In this document: positions 108 to 36,225 of the stretch, in pieces
Numbering within the stretch: position 1 is the stretch's first letter
Layout: every line of letters begins with the position of its first letter
Sequence record: OU509535.1
DNA: 64,000 nt
Reading direction: 5' to 3' (one strand)
Position numbers and translations under genes: made by a program
Notes under the pieces: generated by a model
The model's input: only the letters and a program-made list of their open reading frames with translations
What the model was told of the DNA's origin: nothing
Databases searched by the model: none

Positions 108-216
108 AATTCACGAAGTGAATTGAAATTACTTGTTCTGTAGTCGAACGACAGTGAGACGTGAGAACCAAGTAATTTCTGCATGTATCAACGAAGTGCA
201 AACGGAGTTGATACAT
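108..216. repeat. cluster of inverted repeats (branched hairpins) in non-coding DNA
   Basis: aattcac-gaa-gtgaatt; gaaattacttg...caagtaatttc (11 bp); atgtatcaac...gttgatacat (10 bp). Confidence 0.7.
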
Positions 217-291
217 AGCACTTTAAAACATTATTGAATTCAATAATTAATATTATTATGGTTATTGAATAAATCAAATCGGAGTACTGAA

Positions 292-492
292 ATGAACACT
301 ATTATTTTTTTGATTATACTGAGTACTGGAACAACTACTACAGTAATTAAAGAAATGCCTTCTTTAGTACAATGCAAAGTAATTATGAATTCTGTTTATA
401 AACAACAAAAAGAAAAACAAAAAGAAACAAGTAAAACAGATTACTATTGTTTGAATTCAACAACTAACACTGAGTACTACCCAGATGAATGA
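292..492 (+). CDS. hypothetical protein
   Basis: ORF track; start moved to ATG after GGAG. Confidence 0.6.
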   Translation: MNTIIFLIILSTGTTTTVIKEMPSLVQCKVIMNSVYKQQKEKQKETSKTDYYCLNSTTNTEYYPDE

Positions 493-667
493 ATTCACAT
501 TTCTTTGTACTTATTATTATTATACTTCTGCTAATTCAAAGAAGTATGTAAAGGAAGAAATAAACGTATATACCAGTTCAGTACAAAAAGCTATTTGTGA
601 AGTACATTTGTACTTAGTTTGTTGTGAAGTAATTGATATAGAATATATACATACTATACAGGAATAA
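485..667 (+). CDS. hypothetical protein
   Basis: ORF track; overlaps upstream stop. Confidence 0.65.
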   Translation: MNEFTFLCTYYYYTSANSKKYVKEEINVYTSSVQKAICEVHLYLVCCEVIDIEYIHTIQE

Positions 668-672
668 ATCCA

Positions 673-1563
673 ATGACTTTAAGACTTATTACTGAAGTAG
701 ATAAAACAGTAAGTGAATTAACAAATGAAGAATTGAATAAACTGGACTGGAGTTCAGTACCAAAATCACAACTTCTTTCTATTTCAGATGATCGTTTGAT
801 GAAATGTCCCATCGACATTTTAACTCAAAGTTTTTCTTGTGATAACTATAGCAATGATTTGTGTTTATATATACTCACTTCTAAAATAAAGAAGTGTAAA
901 GATTTTCGAAATGGTTATGCATTATATCATTTATTAAGTAATTTTTTTAATCCAGATTTTATCAAGAATAATAAAAAAGAAATTCTTGAAATGTTAAAAC
1001 GACATGAAGAGATTCATAGTACTGTTACGTTTCCATCAGTTATTCAATACTTGATGAAACATGGAATCATTTCATTTTTTGATTTAAATATGACATTTGA
1101 AACAATCAATGACACATGGGATGCCTTGGAATCCGATATTCCACAGGAAGATTGGATTAAATTAATCACACGTACAAATTACCTTTATTCAACACTCACC
1201 GAACACCATTCAATACAGAATAATGTAATACCATTAAGTACTGAAAACTTATGGAAATGTGGGATTAAAATTAATCCAGTTGTTGATCTTTCGTGGGTTA
1301 AAAATGGAACATATGAATGTGATGATGATTATGTAGACATTTTACTGGAAGATTTAATAGAACAATTAAATTGTACTTCAATCACATGGGATGAAGTACT
1401 AGAAAAATTCAATACATATAAACTTGATAGGGACAACAATCCCCCTTATGGTGTTAATTTTATCAGTACTGTATGGGAACATCACATAATTGACACAAAG
1501 TTTGAATTGAACAGAGATGATTTTTTCAAGAAAAATTTACATCTTTACAAAACTATTGGATAA
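673..1563 (+). CDS. hypothetical protein (296 aa)
   Basis: long ORF, AGGA RBS; no motif recognised. Confidence 0.85.
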   Translation: MTLRLITEVDKTVSELTNEELNKLDWSSVPKSQLLSISDDRLMKCPIDILTQSFSCDNYSNDLCLYILTSKIKKCKDFRNGYALYHLLSNFFNPDFIKNNKKEILEMLKRHEEIHSTVTFPSVIQYLMKHGIISFFDLNMTFETINDTWDALESDIPQEDWIKLITRTNYLYSTLTEHHSIQNNVIPLSTENLWKCGIKINPVVDLSWVKNGTYECDDDYVDILLEDLIEQLNCTSITWDEVLEKFNTYKLDRDNNPPYGVNFISTVWEHHIIDTKFELNRDDFFKKNLHLYKTIG

Positions 1564-1628
1564 AAGTCTTGACATGGAGTACTATTTGAGTAATAATACT
1601 CCTATCTTAATTTAATGAGGAAACACTG

Positions 1629-1793
1629 ATGAAAACTCTATTACTTATTGTAGTCGTGGCTTTTGGTGCATGGTGGTTTTCTGAAAATTTCAGTATAACT
1701 TCAAAAAATGAACCACAACCTGTTCCACAAGAAGTACATACAGATTCTATTGGAACTAAGGTTGATAAAATAATTAAAGTAATTACGGAATAA
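1629..1793 (+). CDS. small membrane-anchored protein (54 aa, not in track)
   Basis: GAGG RBS, upstream TTGACA promoter; MKTLLLIVVVAFGAWWF hydrophobic N-terminus. Confidence 0.65.
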   Translation: MKTLLLIVVVAFGAWWFSENFSITSKNEPQPVPQEVHTDSIGTKVDKIIKVITE

Positions 1794-1798
1794 ATGTT

Positions 1799-2191
1799 AT
1801 GGGATTAGATGTAACTGAAGCTCAAGCAATATTAGAAAACCTAAGAGAAATTAATTCAAAATTTGAACGTAATAATCTCTGTACTGAATGGGATAAAAAA
1901 CTACCCAATAGATTTAGTGAAATCACCAATGAAATTTTATTCAGTACTGGTTTAGTTTGGATTGAACATACTTCTCTGTATAATGTTACATATCGCCATG
2001 AAGGTTATGTTGTTGAATACAATGAATATCTAGATCAGGGCATGAAAGTACTCAAAATGTGGAGTACTGTTTATAACGAGCTAGTAATTATCTGGATTAA
2101 TGAAAGTAATGGTGTTGACTTTGGTGATTTAGAAGAAAGCACTACTAAGGTAGCACCAATTTTTATTGGTTTGTCTGATAATACTATGTAA
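1799..2191 (+). CDS. hypothetical protein
   Basis: ORF track. Confidence 0.75.
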   Translation: MGLDVTEAQAILENLREINSKFERNNLCTEWDKKLPNRFSEITNEILFSTGLVWIEHTSLYNVTYRHEGYVVEYNEYLDQGMKVLKMWSTVYNELVIIWINESNGVDFGDLEESTTKVAPIFIGLSDNTM

Positions 2192-2213
2192 GTATCAAAG
2201 AAAGGTTTTGGTA

Positions 2214-2423
2214 ATGAATGAAAAATTGTCTTTAATTTGGAAAAGTGGTTATGACTTTAAAGTAACACCAAAGGAACTTAGAGTATTTCGTACTGAATAC
2301 TGTGAGTATCTTGATTTAGACCAGTATAATACCATTGTTCGTATTGAACACAATGGTGATGTTGAAGGTCATATCAGTGAAGTACTTGATAAAGCTATTT
2401 CAATTATTGAGGCAAAATTATGA
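2214..2423 (+). CDS. hypothetical protein
   Basis: ORF track; start moved to ATG after AAGG. Confidence 0.7.
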   Translation: MNEKLSLIWKSGYDFKVTPKELRVFRTEYCEYLDLDQYNTIVRIEHNGDVEGHISEVLDKAISIIEAKL

Positions 2424-2617
2424 TTAGTTTTTATTTGGCAGTGATACTTATTAATGGTAATATCGAACGAACACTAGGAAATGGGTTTTATAAAACACCT
2501 GAAGAATGCTATACGACGACAAATTGGCCTCGTGATAGTGAAACTCGTGAAGAATTCAAATGCATCAAGGCTACTGGTGATTTTGTAAATTTCAAAGTTA
2601 TTGAGGTACAAAAATGA
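2420..2617 (+). CDS. hypothetical protein
   Basis: ORF track; ATGA overlap. Confidence 0.7.
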   Translation: MISFYLAVILINGNIERTLGNGFYKTPEECYTTTNWPRDSETREEFKCIKATGDFVNFKVIEVQK

Positions 2618-2895
2618 TTCTTTCAAAAGAAGAACGTGATATTGTATTACACGCTTTATATTTTCTTGAGAATGAAAGTATGCATACGGATGCTTCTATG
2701 GCGTTGATTGAACGTCTTCAGAAAGAAGAAATACCAAAGATTTATCGTATCCGTTATCTTGATGGGGCTGGTGGTGATCGTATTGCCATTGCTGAATCAC
2801 GAGAAGAAGCAGAACAAATCTTCACTGATAATTATTTGAATCCTTTTTTGATGGAAGAAGTTTGTGAAGTGAAAAATGGCACTTTTATTGGTTGA
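2614..2895 (+). CDS. hypothetical protein (MILSKEE N-terminus shared with 3529)
   Basis: ORF track; GAGG RBS. Confidence 0.75.
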   Translation: MILSKEERDIVLHALYFLENESMHTDASMALIERLQKEEIPKIYRIRYLDGAGGDRIAIAESREEAEQIFTDNYLNPFLMEEVCEVKNGTFIG

Positions 2896-2919
2896 CAGAT
2901 AATAAAAATACAGTATAAT
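2892..2919 (+). promoter_or_regulatory. sigma70-like promoter for tRNA-like RNA 1
   Basis: TTGACA-16nt-TATAAT. Confidence 0.75.
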
Positions 2920-2928
2920 GTTTATATC

Positions 2929-3022
2929 AAGACAAGTAGTAGCTTAATATGTTCAAGAGCAGCGAGCAAACACAGCATAATGGTACTCGTCTGTACAGGT
3001 TGCATTCCTGTTTACTTGTCTT
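2929..3022 (+). tRNA. tRNA-like RNA 1 (non-canonical, ~19-nt anticodon loop)
   Basis: 10-bp end stem aagacaagta/tacttgtctt; D-arm-like gcttaatatgttcaagagc; gcgag/ctcgt stem; T-arm acagg-ttgcatt-cctgt. Confidence 0.55.
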
Positions 3023-29477: not shown

Positions 29478-30035
29478 ATGATCATCCAAATCAATAGTTA
29501 TAAAACAAAAGAAGAACTGACCACTCTTATCATTAAAGCTATTCAAAAAGGGGAAAGTTATATCAAAATTCCATTAGATAAAACAAGCAATCGTAATATG
29601 GTTATTTCCCAAATTGATAAAGATTTTGATATCAATATATGCTATATGGAAGAAACCAGTACTGATATCATTTACTCAGGTACTGAATCATTTAAACCAG
29701 ACCAAATCATTACAGCAGCGGATAATTGCGTCCAACGTTATTTCAGTACTGAACCAAATAAAACAATCAGAGAACAACAAAAATATAATACACGAAATAT
29801 GCAAGAAGTAGAAAAACATAGTAAAAACTTCCCCAGTGGTATGACCGTTAAAGAACTAAAAGAATTAATTAGAGATTGGCCTGAAACCAATCAGTACGGA
29901 GAAGATACTTTAGTCTATATCAGTACTGAATCAGATACGGATTGTACTGTACATTCTTCGTGGTGTTCATCAGTAAGAACTAATGATAATGGCACACTTG
30001 TGTATGACTTGACTCTTGATACAGAACAAAGATAA
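29478..30035 (+). CDS. hypothetical protein
   Basis: ORF track; AAGGA RBS. Confidence 0.75.
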   Translation: MIIQINSYKTKEELTTLIIKAIQKGESYIKIPLDKTSNRNMVISQIDKDFDINICYMEETSTDIIYSGTESFKPDQIITAADNCVQRYFSTEPNKTIREQQKYNTRNMQEVEKHSKNFPSGMTVKELKELIRDWPETNQYGEDTLVYISTESDTDCTVHSSWCSSVRTNDNGTLVYDLTLDTEQR

Positions 30036-30043
30036 TTAAAAAG

Positions 30044-30083
30044 ACTCCCCGTAAAACTCGATCAAACGGATTCTACGGGGAGT
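30044..30083. terminator. large hairpin closing the left gene block
   Basis: actccccgta/tacggggagt 10-bp stem, no T run. Confidence 0.45.
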
Positions 30084-30140
30084 ATACTATATTGGACGAT
30101 ATGGTCATTATAGTAGACAATTTAATGGATATAGGTGATT

Positions 30141-30248
30141 CAGTACTGATAATAATGAATAGGAATTGATAAGAATGATTCAGTACTAATAATAATGATT
30201 CAGTACTATTCAGTACTATTCAGTACTATTCAGTACTATTCAGTACTG
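30141..30248. repeat. phased CAGTACT array; tandem 10-mer CAGTACTATT x4 plus CAGTACTG
   Basis: CAGTACT at 30141, 30181, 30201, 30211, 30221, 30231, 30241. Confidence 0.95.
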
Positions 30249-30504
30249 ATATGCCACTAAGTCCGTTTATAAAGTCGCACCCTGTGGGCTACATTTGTAA
30301 CTATTCAGTACTTAATAATTCAATTCATCAACTATTTCAAATCTAATTACCCCATTAACTAAATCCCCAAATTATATATTAGCAAAAATCCCAGTACTAA
30401 ATCAAGAAAAATCTGGATTACCAACGAGAAAAAATCTGGATTTTAAAAATTTTGAAATGTCGTTTATAGTTCAGGAAAAAAATGAAATTATAACAAGAAA
30501 ATTG

Positions 30505-30533
30505 TTGACACGGATATGGTGCCATTATATAAT
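30505..30533 (+). promoter_or_regulatory. consensus sigma70 promoter for ncRNA candidate
   Basis: TTGACA-17-TATAAT. Confidence 0.85.
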
Positions 30534-30539
30534 GTAATC

Positions 30540-30845
30540 CTCAAGACGAGAGAATGTTCTCTCATAGAAATGCGAAGAAGCCGAGTTTATCTGTCCCTGC
30601 GTTAGTGGGCTAACATTTGAATAGGACAATACGTAGATGAATGAAAAAGGTTCAAAGGGAAGTATTTGATTCCCTGTAGTATATAGTTAATGAGTTAGTA
30701 CTGATATAGTTTTAATCATTGAGTAGTACTACTGTCGCAAAGGGAAACCTTTGGCTTCCTTGGGGAGTGATGACAGAAGGGCATTATCCTCCATATGAGT
30801 TACTGCGAATAACTCGGTAAGTTGGGTTTTGGCAAACCTCGTTTC
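30540..30845 (+). ncRNA. ~305-nt highly structured ncRNA candidate
   Basis: no + strand ORF; 5'/3' ends pair (agacgag/ctcgttt); at least eight internal helices. Confidence 0.65.
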
Positions 30846-31031
30846 AATAATAAAATAATTACAGTACTACCAATCAGTAGTACTGCTTTTAATTCAAAGT
30901 GTTTCTTTCCATAGAGAAAAGGTGCATGTAACTTGAACATGTGAACTACGGGAACAGTACTGAACAATTCCAGTACTGATTCCTCTCCAAATTTTGGATA
31001 CAATAATGCTAGGCTTCAGTTAGTACTGAGT

Positions 31032-31148
31032 GAGAATGATAATGATTCTCATTTGAATTGGATGAGAACGATTCTCATTTACTATTGAAAATGATAATAG
31101 ATTGCATTTACTAATGGTTCTCATTCGCAGATGATAATGATTCTTATT
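31032..31148. promoter_or_regulatory. tandem Fur-box-like array
   Basis: GAGAATGATAATGATTCTC (16/19 to GATAATGATAATCATTATC) at 31032 plus further boxes near 31061, 31089, 31111, 31130. Confidence 0.7.
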
Positions 31149-31281
31149 CAAAATTGATTTTTCCGATTTTTTCCATTAGTCCCCCTTCAGCGTAGGGTTA
31201 ATTTTTCCCCTGCCGAATCGGTTTTATATTTTCAAAATCTGGATTAATCATATCAGTACTAACCAAGATAAACAATACCCC

Positions 31282-31296
31282 TTTACAAATCTTTAC
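31282..31296. promoter_or_regulatory. TTTAC-N5-TTTAC (CpxR-box-like) site
   Basis: TTTACAAATCTTTAC. Confidence 0.5.
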
Positions 31297-31320
31297 AAAA
31301 AGATTCTAAATGCGAATATA

Positions 31321-31339
31321 AATGATAATGATTCTCATT
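31321..31339. promoter_or_regulatory. Fur-box-like site
   Basis: TGATAATgATTCTCA, 13/14 to 7-1-7 core. Confidence 0.7.
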
Positions 31340-31344
31340 TACAG

Positions 31345-31394
31345 TACTGAATACTTTTTCCCACGCCCTGGCGTCTCCGGTTCCTCCCGTCTAT
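31345..31394 (-). ncRNA. degenerate small non-coding unit
   Basis: minus-strand TTGACT-16-TATAAT at 31401-31428; GC-rich motif variant, no ORF. Confidence 0.35.
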
Positions 31395-31496
31395 ATAAAC
31401 ATTATACAGTACTGAAATATTAAGTCAATACTATTTTTTCAAAAAGATTAAAATAAAATACTTGCAATGCTGATATTATTATATTATAATGTTTAT

Positions 31497-31545
31497 AGTA
31501 CTGAGAAAGTGCTTTTTGCCCACTAGGGTGCTGGGGAGTATGCGT
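31497..31545 (+). ncRNA. small non-coding unit (degenerate copy)
   Basis: TTGCAA-17-TATAAT at 31462-31490; 5' hairpin; CCCACTAGGGTGC. Confidence 0.5.
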
Positions 31546-31550
31546 TAAAT

Positions 31551-31569
31551 GAGAATGATAATCATTTAC
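31551..31569. promoter_or_regulatory. Fur-box-like site
   Basis: GAGAATGATAATCATTTAC, 16/19. Confidence 0.7.
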
Positions 31570-31615
31570 AGTACTGGACGGATTTTCCCACCCTCGGGGG
31601 TCTCTTTTTGTCTAT
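31570..31615 (-). ncRNA. degenerate small non-coding unit
   Basis: minus-strand TTGATA-16-TATAAT at 31622-31649; CCCCCGAGGGTGG. Confidence 0.35.
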
Positions 31616-31654
31616 GTAGTAATTATACAGTACTGAGATACTATATCAAGTCTC

Positions 31655-31669
31655 TTTACAAATCTTTAC
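31655..31669. promoter_or_regulatory. CpxR-box-like site
   Basis: TTTACAAATCTTTAC. Confidence 0.5.
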
Positions 31670-31763
31670 AAATCACCCGGGTAGATTTATCTTTACAATA
31701 AAAGTACTTGCTTTAATCTTTCAGTACTGTTATTATATATTCATACCAAACAGGAGAACTACC

Positions 31764-31934
31764 ATGAAATACGCGTACTCTTATTTTATTGTAAACGGTG
31801 AACGTTTGACCATCGGCCAGGCTGCTGTAAAACATGAAATCATTTGCGATGATCTGGCAAAGATGCTACCAGGTGAAACGCAAGAGTTTTACAAAGGCTT
31901 TCAGAAAGTCACTGTGACCCGCTGTGAAGATTGA
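31764..31934 (+). CDS. small hypothetical protein (56 aa, not in track)
   Basis: AGGAG RBS, own promoter. Confidence 0.7.
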   Translation: MKYAYSYFIVNGERLTIGQAAVKHEIICDDLAKMLPGETQEFYKGFQKVTVTRCED

Positions 31935-31998
31935 TCCAGTACTGGGGTAGGAATACCCCTAAAACGTCCTGTAACGCATTGTAAGAGGTTTTTATAAT

Positions 31999-32226
31999 AT
32001 GGCTATAGAAGTTAACGCTGGGGATATAAAGGCGGCTGTACTGCGTACCCTGAAAGCATACGGCAGAAAGCTGAATGATCGCAACGTTCCCTATTATTTC
32101 CTTGCTGCTACTCATAAAATGGCAATAGCTGAGGCTCGCGGGTGGCTGAATGATCGCAGTACTGTAAAGAGTACCAGAACAAGAAACGCAATTGAGCGAT
32201 GGATAAAAGAATTAAATCATTTCTAA
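31999..32226 (+). CDS. small basic hypothetical protein
   Basis: ORF track; GAGG RBS. Confidence 0.7.
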   Translation: MAIEVNAGDIKAAVLRTLKAYGRKLNDRNVPYYFLAATHKMAIAEARGWLNDRSTVKSTRTRNAIERWIKELNHF

Positions 32227-32299
32227 TAGTTCAGCTAAGGGAATCAGTACTGATTCCCTGTTTAGTACTGAAATTATAAGGGGAGTTAATTAATTCCCC

Positions 32300-32314
32300 T
32301 TTACAAATCTTTAC
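32300..32314. promoter_or_regulatory. CpxR-box-like site
   Basis: TTTACAAATCTTTAC 10 bp upstream of TTGACA at 32325. Confidence 0.5.
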
Positions 32315-32359
32315 AAAAGAATGGTTGACATAGTATTCCAGTACTGGTATTATGTATTC

Positions 32360-32410
32360 ATAGACAGAACAAGTCTTTGGCCCACCGGGTGCGGAGGAGT
32401 ATCTATTAGA
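32360..32410 (+). ncRNA. small non-coding unit (conserved family)
   Basis: promoter 32325-32353; agac-agaacaa-gtct; CCCACCGGGTGC; GTATCTAT. Confidence 0.6.
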
Positions 32411-32414
32411 TTGA

Positions 32415-32439
32415 ATGAGAATGAGAATGATTTGCATTT
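32415..32439. promoter_or_regulatory. Fur-box-like site
   Basis: TGAGAATgATTTGCA preceded by extra AATGAG hexamer. Confidence 0.6.
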
Positions 32440-32444
32440 ACTGT

Positions 32445-32494
32445 ACTGAATATATTTCCGCACCCTTTTGGGCTTTTCGATTACTTTCTACTTG
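32445..32494 (-). ncRNA. small non-coding unit (degenerate copy)
   Basis: minus-strand TTGCAT-16-TATACT; CCCAAAAGGGTGC. Confidence 0.45.
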
Positions 32495-32533
32495 TTAATA
32501 AGTATACCATAATCAGTACTGAATGCAATGGTC

Positions 32534-32548
32534 TTTACAAATCTTTAC
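32534..32548. promoter_or_regulatory. CpxR-box-like site
   Basis: TTTACAAATCTTTAC. Confidence 0.5.
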
Positions 32549-32645
32549 AAAAGAAAATAATTATAAAAAGTACTGAAAAAGTACTTGACGTAATAATGTA
32601 GTACTGGCATAATGAGTACATACCAAACAGAACGGAGTAACTAAA

Positions 32646-32933
32646 ATGTTTAATGAAAATGATCATATTGTTAAAGAGTTTTCTTTCAGTAAGCCGATCC
32701 ATTTAGAAAACGGTGAAACGCTGGACAATAAATTTTATGGTAGTATTATTAAGCGTTATACATCGCGTAGTAGTACTGGAATTTTGTGGGAAGTGAATAA
32801 ACAGTACAATGGTAATTCGCTGGTTGTCAATGAGTGGGAAAGTTATGCAGTAGCGGAAATGGATTTTTCTAACTTCATTACTGAATCTTTGAACGATGAT
32901 ATCTTTTACAAGTTCACAGCGGAAAGGGTTTAA
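32646..32933 (+). CDS. hypothetical protein
   Basis: ORF track; GGAG RBS, own promoter. Confidence 0.8.
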   Translation: MFNENDHIVKEFSFSKPIHLENGETLDNKFYGSIIKRYTSRSSTGILWEVNKQYNGNSLVVNEWESYAVAEMDFSNFITESLNDDIFYKFTAERV

Positions 32934-33053
32934 AAAGTTTTAAAGAGTACTTGACAACATAAACCAGTACTGTATAATGTATTGCATAGAAAGGAGATTC
33001 CATTATTCTGGAATCTCCGATAAAACAAACTAATCAGTGAAGGAGTAATTGCC

Positions 33054-33665
33054 ATGAATGTTATCGATACCATCTATTCTAAATCTTTCGATGAACTGAA
33101 TGCAGAGCAGAAAGAAAAAGCAATTGATATTATGCGGGATCTGGAACGCCACGATTCAGATCCATTCTGGGCACAATTAATTAATGAAGATAAACGCGAA
33201 TTAATGGATAATGAATATGGTTTTACTGATACTGTAATTCATTATAGCGGCTTTTGCTCACAAGGCGATGGGGCGTCAATTAGTACTGAATCAATCGACG
33301 CCGAGACGTTTTTACGCAAAATTAAAGCATGGTCGAAATTCCGTGTATTGCATAAACATTTCAATGATGGTAATATTACATTAAAGATCGCTCGCAACGA
33401 TCATCGTTATTCTCATGAAAATACCGTTTATGGTGTGGTGGATCTGGACTACGGCACTGAATTCACTGCTAAACAGGAAGAGAAAGCGGAAGAACTTGAA
33501 ACGCTTTTGACTGAAACTATTCGTGATCTTTCACGCCAGCATTATCAGGTTCTGAGCGATGAAAACGATTATCAAAATAGTGATGAAGCATTGATTGAAT
33601 CGATTAATGCAAATGATTATAATTTCAAAGTGGATAGTACTGGTAACGTATTGGGGTTAGCGTAA
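33054..33665 (+). CDS. conserved phage/ICE protein of the family often labelled antitoxin of toxin-antitoxin stability system
   Basis: YSGFCSQGDGAS, RYSHENT, YQNSDEALIESINANDYNF motifs recalled from that family; function unverified. Confidence 0.6.
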   Translation: MNVIDTIYSKSFDELNAEQKEKAIDIMRDLERHDSDPFWAQLINEDKRELMDNEYGFTDTVIHYSGFCSQGDGASISTESIDAETFLRKIKAWSKFRVLHKHFNDGNITLKIARNDHRYSHENTVYGVVDLDYGTEFTAKQEEKAEELETLLTETIRDLSRQHYQVLSDENDYQNSDEALIESINANDYNFKVDSTGNVLGLA

Positions 33666-35622: not shown

Positions 35623-35724
35623 AACTAAAAAGAAAAAAGTAGTTGACAAGTACTAACGAGAATGAGATAATCTCTCTCGTTGAAACAAACAAACAATCTT
35701 AATCAAAACTTAAAGGTGAATAAA

Positions 35725-36225
35725 ATGGCTAAACTGAATTCTGTTGTTGTTGCTCTGATCGCTGGTGATATCGCTGCTCTGAATGCTTCTTTCGCGTCGG
35801 TATCGATGGAAGATATGAAAACTGTTCGTAACAACTTTAACGATTTTTACTCCAAATTCAAAGCTGCAAATGAAGCGGCGGAAGCGGCTGCAAAAGAGCG
35901 TAAAGCACAGATCGAAACCGAAACTAAAGAACTGGTAGACGCCCTGGTAGCTGCTGGCCTGGATCTGGAAATGGCCGCCGAAGTCGCCAGCCAGAAAATG
36001 GCGGTGAAATATCCCGAACTGGCTCCGAAGTCGGGAACTGGTAAAACCTGGTCGTTTGAAACCGTATTCGTTAACGTTGACGGTGAAAAACTGGAAATTG
36101 GCACCAAAGGCAACAAAGGCAGTATGAAAGCACTGGCGGCGGCACGCGAAGCAATTGCCGCTGGCAAATACAAAGATCGTGCTGAATGGATCGCCGCTCA
36201 CGCCTGGACTGAAACCGAAGCGTAA
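35725..36225 (+). CDS. putative H-NS/StpA-like N-terminal domain protein
   Basis: SMEDMKTV..AAEAAAKERKAQIE..LVAAGLD resembles H-NS TLETLEEM..AAAAEVEERTRKLQ..LIADGID; strongly host-optimal codons; C-terminal H-NS TWTGQG motif absent. Confidence 0.45.
   Translation: MAKLNSVVVALIAGDIAALNASFASVSMEDMKTVRNNFNDFYSKFKAANEAAEAAAKERKAQIETETKELVDALVAAGLDLEMAAEVASQKMAVKYPELAPKSGTGKTWSFETVFVNVDGEKLEIGTKGNKGSMKALAAAREAIAAGKYKDRAEWIAAHAWTETEA

Follow-up and report, generated by a model that had tools for sequence, protein, structure and literature searches.

A cluster of sites resembling the operator of the host repressor Fur lies in non-coding DNA of a Klebsiella phage, at positions 31032–32439 of a 64,000-nucleotide stretch of sequence record OU509535.1 (hereafter the window, whose first letter is position 1). 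The cluster is real, strongly non-random and conserved among the relatives of the phage, and the identity of its members as Fur operators is well supported by their sequence. It is likely that host Fur binds these boxes: their scores are like those of the best natural operators, their pattern is kept under sequence turnover, and in a sister lineage the same locus carries a look-alike of the operator of a second host repressor, MetJ, which makes coincidence improbable. We therefore favour, with reasonable though not strong confidence, the reading that genuine operators of the host-Fur type recruit Fe2+-Fur to the predicted leading ~2 kb of the genome.

Positions 30400–33000 of the window are 100% identical to the Klebsiella phage record OU509535.1 and 95–96% identical to the phages RaK2, K64-1, Muenster and RCIP0023; by its sequence, the source is a RaK2/K64-1-like Klebsiella jumbo myovirus of the genus Alcyoneusvirus (~346 kb group). 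The full genome of OU509535.1 counts 347,546 bp, and the part beyond the window was added for a genome-wide scan.

Sequence statistics of the Fur-like sites

The preliminary description of this DNA had reported at least eight sites similar to Fur boxes, five in tandem and three single; all eight were located where it had placed them, and with the best matches that it had given, namely 16 of the 19 positions of the consensus (reached at three sites) and 13 of the 14 positions of the 7-1-7 core (reached at two, 31037 and 31323). When up to three mismatches are allowed, the 19-mer Fur consensus is found in the 64 kb only at 31032, 31324 (minus strand) and 31551, 0.13 occurrences being expected by chance, and none of 100 shuffled sequences gave three matches.

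A Fur weight matrix was built from the best site of each of 13 Fur-regulated upstream regions of E. coli K-12 (fepA-fes, fepD-entS, fepB-entC, fhuA, fiu, cirA, tonB, exbB, fecI, fecA, ryhB, fhuF and fur), by consensus-seeded refinement followed by symmetrisation; scoring used the phage's own base composition, and the background was a Markov-1 simulation. The E. coli sites used for the matrix score 3.4–19.1 bits by leave-one-out (median 12.9). The eight best positions of the window all fall in 31032–32423, at 13.6–18.4 bits, in keeping with the earlier remark that no comparable cluster had been noticed elsewhere in it; at 12 bits or more, eight of the nine positions in the window belong to the cluster (1.9 being expected per 64 kb under the Markov-1 model), and these eight lie within 1.46 kb, where ~0.04 are expected. 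In the complete genome, the top seven scores, as well as 8 of the 12 positions with at least 13.5 bits, are found within 31032–32441. The comparison of a weight-matrix scan with background had been set beforehand as the refuting test, and by this test the cluster stands far above background and is unique genome-wide. Chance in AT-rich DNA is excluded by the shuffles, by the Markov simulation on the phage background and by the genome-wide ranking.

The internal structure of the sites points in the same direction. Pairs of hits exactly 6 bp apart are present in five of the eight boxes (31032/31038, 31087/31093, 31127/31133, 31318/31324 and 32417/32423), and a 6-bp offset of overlapping sites, which places two dimers on opposite faces, is the spacing of genuine Fur site clusters (PMC2189734). 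The GAGAAT/ATTCTC variant favoured by the phage is also present in the E. coli fhuA, ryhB, fecI, fepB-entC and exbB sites, and the Fur of K. pneumoniae uses the same 19-bp box, its ryhB promoter being able to titrate Fur in E. coli (PMC3423075). Compared to the enterobacterial Fur operators (such as fepA-fes, fhuF, ryhB and fecI), the phage boxes share the 19-bp pattern of GATAAT-type hexamers and the 6-bp overlaps, with scores in the upper range; they differ in lying off the −35 and −10 elements, in the non-coding end of a lytic phage, in the spaced tandem of five and in the preference for GAGAAT. The proposal that they are enterobacterial Fur operators thus held on every available test of sequence likeness, and did not hold as far as overlap with a −35/−10 element or a start site is concerned. 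Among other repressors, ArgR, Zur, PerR, TyrR and TrpR, whose consensuses were compared informally and without computed scores, fit the sites more poorly than Fur.

Conservation of the module and its MetJ-like counterpart

The module is common to the entire RaK2-like group. Fur-like boxes of at least 12 bits occur at corresponding places, both in the array and at the hairpin apices, in Muenster (9 boxes), in Hallingskeid, a phage of Erwinia (8), in Munch, a phage of Salmonella (6), in Kae01, a phage of K. aerogenes (7), and in XaC1 (3); the array sequences have diverged between lineages while the Fur-like pattern persists, and a 360-kb metagenomic contig carries an array of six boxes, diverged in sequence from that of Munch, with scores up to 19.2 bits. 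In Hallingskeid, one Fur-like box is found in the 5' leader of a small gene, far from the genome end. The array was not found in the examined stretches of Kaldavass-like contigs, and scans of IMG/VR with the short anchors GTCTATGTAGTAATTATA, GCTAGCCTACCGCG and GGATTTTGGGCGTA returned mostly chance matches, L039 alone being useful.

The Asteriusvirus lineage (A4, CRJP21, SD-2_S15, UE-S1 and EJP2; phages of E. coli and Salmonella) has no Fur-like site. At the same position, and with the same flanking blocks, these phages carry ~19 in-phase 8-mers that match AGACGTCT on average at 6 of 8 positions; tandem AGACGTCT, in two or more metboxes, defines the MetJ operator (PMC4239095). The metbox-like arrays are located at 2084–2236 in A4 (L007), at ~763–905 in CRJP21 (L004) and at ~1290–1470 in L030, L031 and L032. 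Over 13 boxes, the A4 array scores 78/104 against the MetJ consensus, the best of 200–1000 shuffles reaching 49, and the arrays of CRJP21, SD-2_S15, UE-S1 and EJP2 score 75–77/104; in EJP2, the sequence has diverged and the phased 8-mer pattern is kept. Per box, the match is equal to that of the genuine metJ-metB operator (24/32, versus 24–25/32 in the phage arrays), but the ~19 boxes of the phages do not lie upstream of a met gene. In the present window a metbox-like array is absent, the best run of eight boxes scoring 30/64. All arrays, whichever their motif, measure 95–150 bp, and they lie ~700–900 bp from the end in three lineages. The Salmonella-infecting members of Asteriusvirus carry metbox-like arrays.

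Two side observations concern Fur-like sites in these relatives. XaC1, recorded as infecting Xanthomonas, has early promoters of the AGTACT type and two Fur-like boxes in half-units (L011, 2880–3060). Position 33561 of the window scores 11.3 bits, and the homologous site of the Munch group scores 18.2 bits with two mismatches (L005, 2343–2361 in Munch; L010, 2342; L039, 2039), inside the coding sequence of a 203-aa early gene annotated in Muenster as a YeeU-like antitoxin.

Position of the sites at the predicted genome end

The sites occupy a stretch of ~2.5 kb which precedes the early genes and has only two small open reading frames (ORFs), of 56 and 75 aa. The homologous region of Muenster corresponds to positions 168–3005 of a record which opens with a terminal repeat of 20,030 bp predicted by PhageTerm (1–20030); position 1 of Muenster aligns to ~30260 of the window, directly after seven tandem 10-bp repeats that contain AGTACT (ATTCAGTACT, ~7 copies, 30178–30247, directly to the left of the predicted end), and the record of CRJP21, an E. 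coli relative, has its first position at the homologous point of phage A4. The GC content is 0.34–0.38 over ~30–50 kb (30000–50300), 0.25–0.33 on the flanks and 0.25–0.29 past ~50 kb, and these boundaries match the limits of the 20-kb repeat predicted for Muenster. From the starts of the Muenster and CRJP21 records and the shift in GC, the left physical end, where a direct terminal repeat of ~20 kb would start, is predicted at ~30260 (30254–30266), so that the Fur-like sites would lie 0.8–2.2 kb inside it; the five-box array begins 772 bp from this predicted end. In the related phage fEgEco12, terminal repeats of ~21 kb have been confirmed by restriction digests, which agree with the in-silico patterns (PMC13070987); the DNA is therefore probably not heavily modified, and the boxes would be accessible. 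No tRNA is present in the 64-kb window.

Layout of boxes, promoters and hairpins

The five tandem boxes extend from 31032 to 31151 (18.4/15.3, 13.6, 11.1/9.3, 14.5 and 8.7/10.3 bits) and form an array of ~120 bp, with 23–32 bp between boxes, in a pocket bounded by terminator-like hairpins and with no adjacent promoter. On its left, a consensus sigma-70 promoter, P1 (30505–30533, plus strand, 12/12), is predicted to start a non-coding transcript of ~335 nucleotides, ended by a terminator-like hairpin (30862–30885, scored on both strands) that would insulate the array; on its right, a hairpin with a T-rich tail (31178–31200, plus strand, read from the sequence, all lineages) belongs to a conserved block for which blastn gives matches in 40 phage records.

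Each of the three single boxes has a strong sigma-70 promoter nearby, relative to which it falls within +46 to +72. Box C (31318–31342, 10.7/16.5 bits), which is followed by CAGTACTG and the 3' arm of a half-unit, stands at +52 to +70 from a leftward sigma-70 promoter (31428–31401, minus strand, 11/12) directed through it toward the array. The other two belong to the paralogous units A and B, in each of which a rightward promoter is followed by a small hairpin on the 5' side, a long one whose base is GC-rich, and finally a run of T. In unit A, the promoter found by scoring at 31462–31490 (plus strand, 10/12) is followed by a long hairpin with a conserved GC-rich base (31516–31609, plus strand), with box A at its apex (31551–31569, 17.5 bits), a T run and a terminator-like site at 31585–31600; a leftward sigma-70 promoter (31622–31649, minus strand, 11/12) converges on the unit, and the −10 element and start region of this promoter are the most conserved sequence of the module in all lineages, its homologues in Hallingskeid, Munch and CRJP21 being near-consensus as read from the sequence. 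In unit B, the promoter at 32325–32353 (plus strand, 11/12) precedes a long hairpin (32378–32478, plus strand, z = −5.3) with box B at its apex (32417–32441, 14.4/14.6 bits) and a T run, and a weaker leftward promoter, recognised by eye, comes after it. Both units, from the promoters at 31462 and 32325, have the promoter, the stable hairpin and the T run on the transcribed strand that mark a small-RNA cassette, the predicted small RNA being of ~115 nucleotides; the earlier statement that small RNAs run into the boxes is borne out to this extent, two boxes standing at the apex of such units. The leftward promoters that converge on the boxes, the location at the predicted genome end within the terminal repeat and the MetJ-like array of the sister phages had not been part of that description.

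The folding z-scores of the hairpins range from −3.4 to −6.4 in six of the eight units tested; they are −5.1 to −6.4 for Hallingskeid unit 1, Munch and Kae01, and only −1.5 for unit A. In all 14 units the RNA of the plus strand folds better than that of the minus strand, with more G-U pairs. The 12 consensus pairs are nearly all invariant, with a compensatory double change in one of them and a covariation term of −0.19, so that the helices lend no covariation support; a search of Rfam 15 gave no match at gathering score in the 64-kb window, and none at E values up to 5 over 30000–33200.

Other features of the module are the following. The sequence CTTTACAAATCTTTACAAA occurs in four copies, the only ones in the genome (31281–31299, plus strand, 31654–31672, 32299–32317 and 32533–32551); three of the four lie 8–35 bp upstream of the −35 element of rightward promoters, and the sequence may serve as an UP element or bind an activator. 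The region of the P1 transcript (30540–30890, plus strand) contains several hairpins and CCTCC-containing stretches, as does the homologous RNA of A4. AGTACT is found 945 times in the OU509535.1 genome, ~119 being expected (examples in the window at 30136–30252, 31343–31350 and 32341–32348), and CAGTACTG 246 times, ~3 being expected; it sits in the spacer by the −10 and beside the −35 of early promoters, and builds the 10-bp repeat of the end. The short motif AAATCTGGA(A/T)T is repeated in all lineages, close to the genome end and again right after the array (30410–30445 and 31233–31245 in the window, with homologous places in L003, L005 and L007). No convincing small ORF was found in the leftward transcripts. 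The annotations of RaK2, K64-1 and Hallingskeid place small "hypothetical proteins" on top of the hairpin units, the boxes and the promoters that face each other (for example 31549–31701 of the window, which is RaK2 ORF323, and L003 3981–4082 with its neighbours); these are probably not genes.

Candidate binding proteins

No RaK2-like phage gave a hit when E. coli Fur and MetJ were compared by tblastn with 50,697 phage records, and a phage-encoded Fur or MetJ was on this ground rejected as the binder. The products of the neighbouring ORFs were likewise rejected as box-binders: Pfam detects no sequence-specific DNA-binding domain in ten of them, and the 56-aa and 75-aa ORFs nearest the boxes are confined to Alcyoneusvirus, so that their distribution differs from that of the boxes. 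The early ORF at 35680–36222 (plus strand, 181 aa) matches the H-NS N-terminal domain PF22470 with 26.5 bits, above the cut-off, and may encode an H-NS-like phage protein in the terminal repeat.

Proposed function of the boxes

In the mechanism that we propose, Fur would coat the boxes in an iron-replete cell and block RNA polymerase from either side, thus tying the transcription of the small RNAs, and the antisense transcription of the early region, to the iron status of the host; replication of the genome would then add Fur-binding capacity, of roughly 13–16 dimers per copy of the repeat. From their place between promoters that face each other, the single boxes could serve as a roadblock, dependent on iron, to the small RNAs and antisense transcripts. 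The arrays, long, insulated and without a promoter, point to a platform for binding, which could be a sponge at 100 or more genome copies or a physical device where the DNA enters; that the array is fixed in position and length argues for a position-dependent role, and that its sites are in excess argues for avidity or titration. In the distant relative PA5oct, which uses the host RNA polymerase, the terminal repeat is transcribed early and gives rise to abundant non-coding RNAs, and host transcripts account for 79% of the reads early and 7% late in infection (PMC7318152); both transcription-linked and titration effects would thus be feasible.

Several observations weigh against these boxes being operators for host Fur. 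They overlap neither a −35/−10 element nor a start site, as classical Fur operators do, and the array is near no promoter at all. The matrix by which they were scored was seeded with the consensus, so that the procedure is partly circular and its independence of that consensus incomplete. Position 3 of the 19-mer, a T in the Fur consensus, is preferentially G or A in that of the phages across lineages, a departure that could indicate a different protein, although the comparison is partly circular in its turn, the phage sites having been picked by the Fur matrix. Since the apex boxes belong to hairpins that favour the plus strand, a constraint at the RNA level may contribute to their conservation. 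Finally, Asteriusvirus keeps the full module with no Fur-like box, so that Fur is not essential to it.

A wider reading, to which we give less than even weight, sees at this locus an exchangeable operator cassette for host metabolite-sensing repressors near the leading end, the repressor being Fur (Fe2+) in the phage lineages of Klebsiella, Salmonella and Erwinia, and MetJ (S-adenosylmethionine, SAM) in the E. coli Asteriusvirus lineage; the state of the host would be read, or rewired by titration, via DNA sites alone and with no phage protein.

Alternative explanations

One alternative takes the sponge as the primary function: Fur would be soaked up as the genome copies, derepressing iron uptake (in Klebsiella also RyhB and the capsule), and the metbox array would act likewise on MetJ, raising the synthesis of methionine and SAM. 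This overlaps the favoured recruitment of Fur to operators, from which it differs solely in the effect that was selected, and we hold it rather unlikely. The Fur pool of a cell amounts to several thousand molecules, against which an incoming genome offers ~16 dimer sites, so that an effect would need at least 100 genome copies and late infection. A fixed position would be unnecessary for a sponge, yet the place and length of the array (95–150 bp) are constant in all lineages, and the single boxes are precisely placed between convergent promoters. What speaks for a sponge is that the arrays of five boxes and of ~19 metboxes far exceed the number of sites in a normal operator (two or more metboxes; PMC4239095), that they lie away from promoters and are insulated by terminator-like hairpins, that a location in the terminal repeat means two copies in packaged DNA, that, in the titration assay, Fur boxes in multicopy relieve the repression of a reporter (PMC3423075), and that PA5oct uses the host RNA polymerase, host transcripts lasting well into infection (PMC7318152). 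Filaments of a host repressor might also act physically on the DNA end that enters, as an entry anchor, a ratchet or an insulator, for which any abundant cooperative repressor would suffice; this would explain the swap from Fur to MetJ, and fits the fixed distance of the array from the end (~700–900 bp) in three lineages, its similar length (95–150 bp) whatever the motif and its insulation by terminator-like hairpins. Such a device is conjectural, the entering end itself being presumed, and it leaves the single boxes inside transcription units unexplained; we consider it improbable.

The boxes might instead bind a phage protein, such as the terminase small subunit at a pac site, a replication initiator or an early regulator, the likeness to Fur boxes and metboxes being coincidental or convergent. 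Repeat arrays that vary between lineages near a genome end are typical of packaging sites and origins, and the array stands 772 bp from the predicted end; the departure at position 3 of the Fur consensus is consistent, and the type of array tracks the lineage of the phage and not the host, the Salmonella-infecting Asteriusvirus being metbox-like. This explanation requires two independent look-alikes, one scoring as the best Fur sites do and one with an 8-bp tandem pattern at the level of metJ-metB, and we judge it unlikely: the phages encode no Fur or MetJ homologue detectable by tblastn, the adjacent small ORFs are limited to Alcyoneusvirus and the ten neighbours have no sequence-specific domain, Fur-like boxes occur also in operator-like places far from the end (the 5' leader in Hallingskeid), and host Fur would compete for such sites anyway. 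Equally, the motif could act in RNA, with no part for Fur, by forming the top stem-loop of small RNAs made early and in abundance, as well as hairpins within longer non-coding transcripts. Units A and B and their homologues are cassettes of promoter, hairpin and T run, with z of −3.4 to −6.4 in 6 of 8 and better folding of the plus strand, with more G-U pairs, in 14 of 14; the box, being itself a palindrome, forms the apex, and in the distant relative the terminal repeat yields non-coding RNAs in abundance (PMC7318152). Neither the tandem array nor box C, however, is part of a hairpin unit, and the Asteriusvirus units keep the base of the hairpin with unrelated apex sequences, which implies that the apex sequence is dispensable for the RNA fold; these two facts make a purely RNA-level role unlikely. 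The base pairs, moreover, are conserved and not covarying (a term of −0.19, 1 of 12 pairs), and Rfam gives no match even at E = 5; on balance, we give this explanation little credence.

Relation to known systems

The non-coding left ends of T7 and T5 bring early promoters, repeats and sites for host factors into the cell with the first-entering DNA. The module described here is likewise a promoter-dense, non-coding start of a terminal repeat with early genes, and has no sequence relationship to them; Fur or MetJ box arrays are not known from those ends. Titration of a DNA-binding protein by multicopy sites is exemplified by the chromosomal datA locus, which titrates DnaA. Among the cargo of temperate phages, stx1 has a Fur box upstream. 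Known phage Fur boxes control cargo operons on prophages, for example sitABCD on lambdoid phages (PMC6969025). Such cargo boxes are a single operator for one cargo operon of a prophage, whereas here eight boxes, with no iron-related gene, are found in a virulent jumbo phage. In the Fur titration assay, multicopy Fur boxes derepress a reporter (PMC3423075), and many high-affinity sites with no regulated gene could, in the same manner, lower the free repressor as copies rise; for the phage arrays, titration is our extrapolation. In the literature searched, we found neither a natural phage-borne decoy array for Fur or MetJ nor any description of arrayed Fur or MetJ boxes in these phages.

Significance

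Phages manipulate host metabolism with proteins and small RNAs. If the proposed reading is true, a conserved array of host-repressor operators with no cargo gene, in a virulent phage, would represent sensing or rewiring of the host iron status by DNA only, and the same would apply to methionine and SAM in the sister phages of E. coli; since Fur-like and MetJ-like arrays replace each other at one locus, exchange of the cassettes would be a simple way to test the idea. A further result is a set of conserved, non-coding early units at the genome end, mislabelled in current annotations as small hypothetical proteins. The Fur of K. pneumoniae controls capsule synthesis as well (PMC3423075), and the capsule is the receptor layer attacked by these depolymerase-rich phages; Fur binding or titration could therefore bear on the dynamics between phage and host, and on the use of these phages in therapy.

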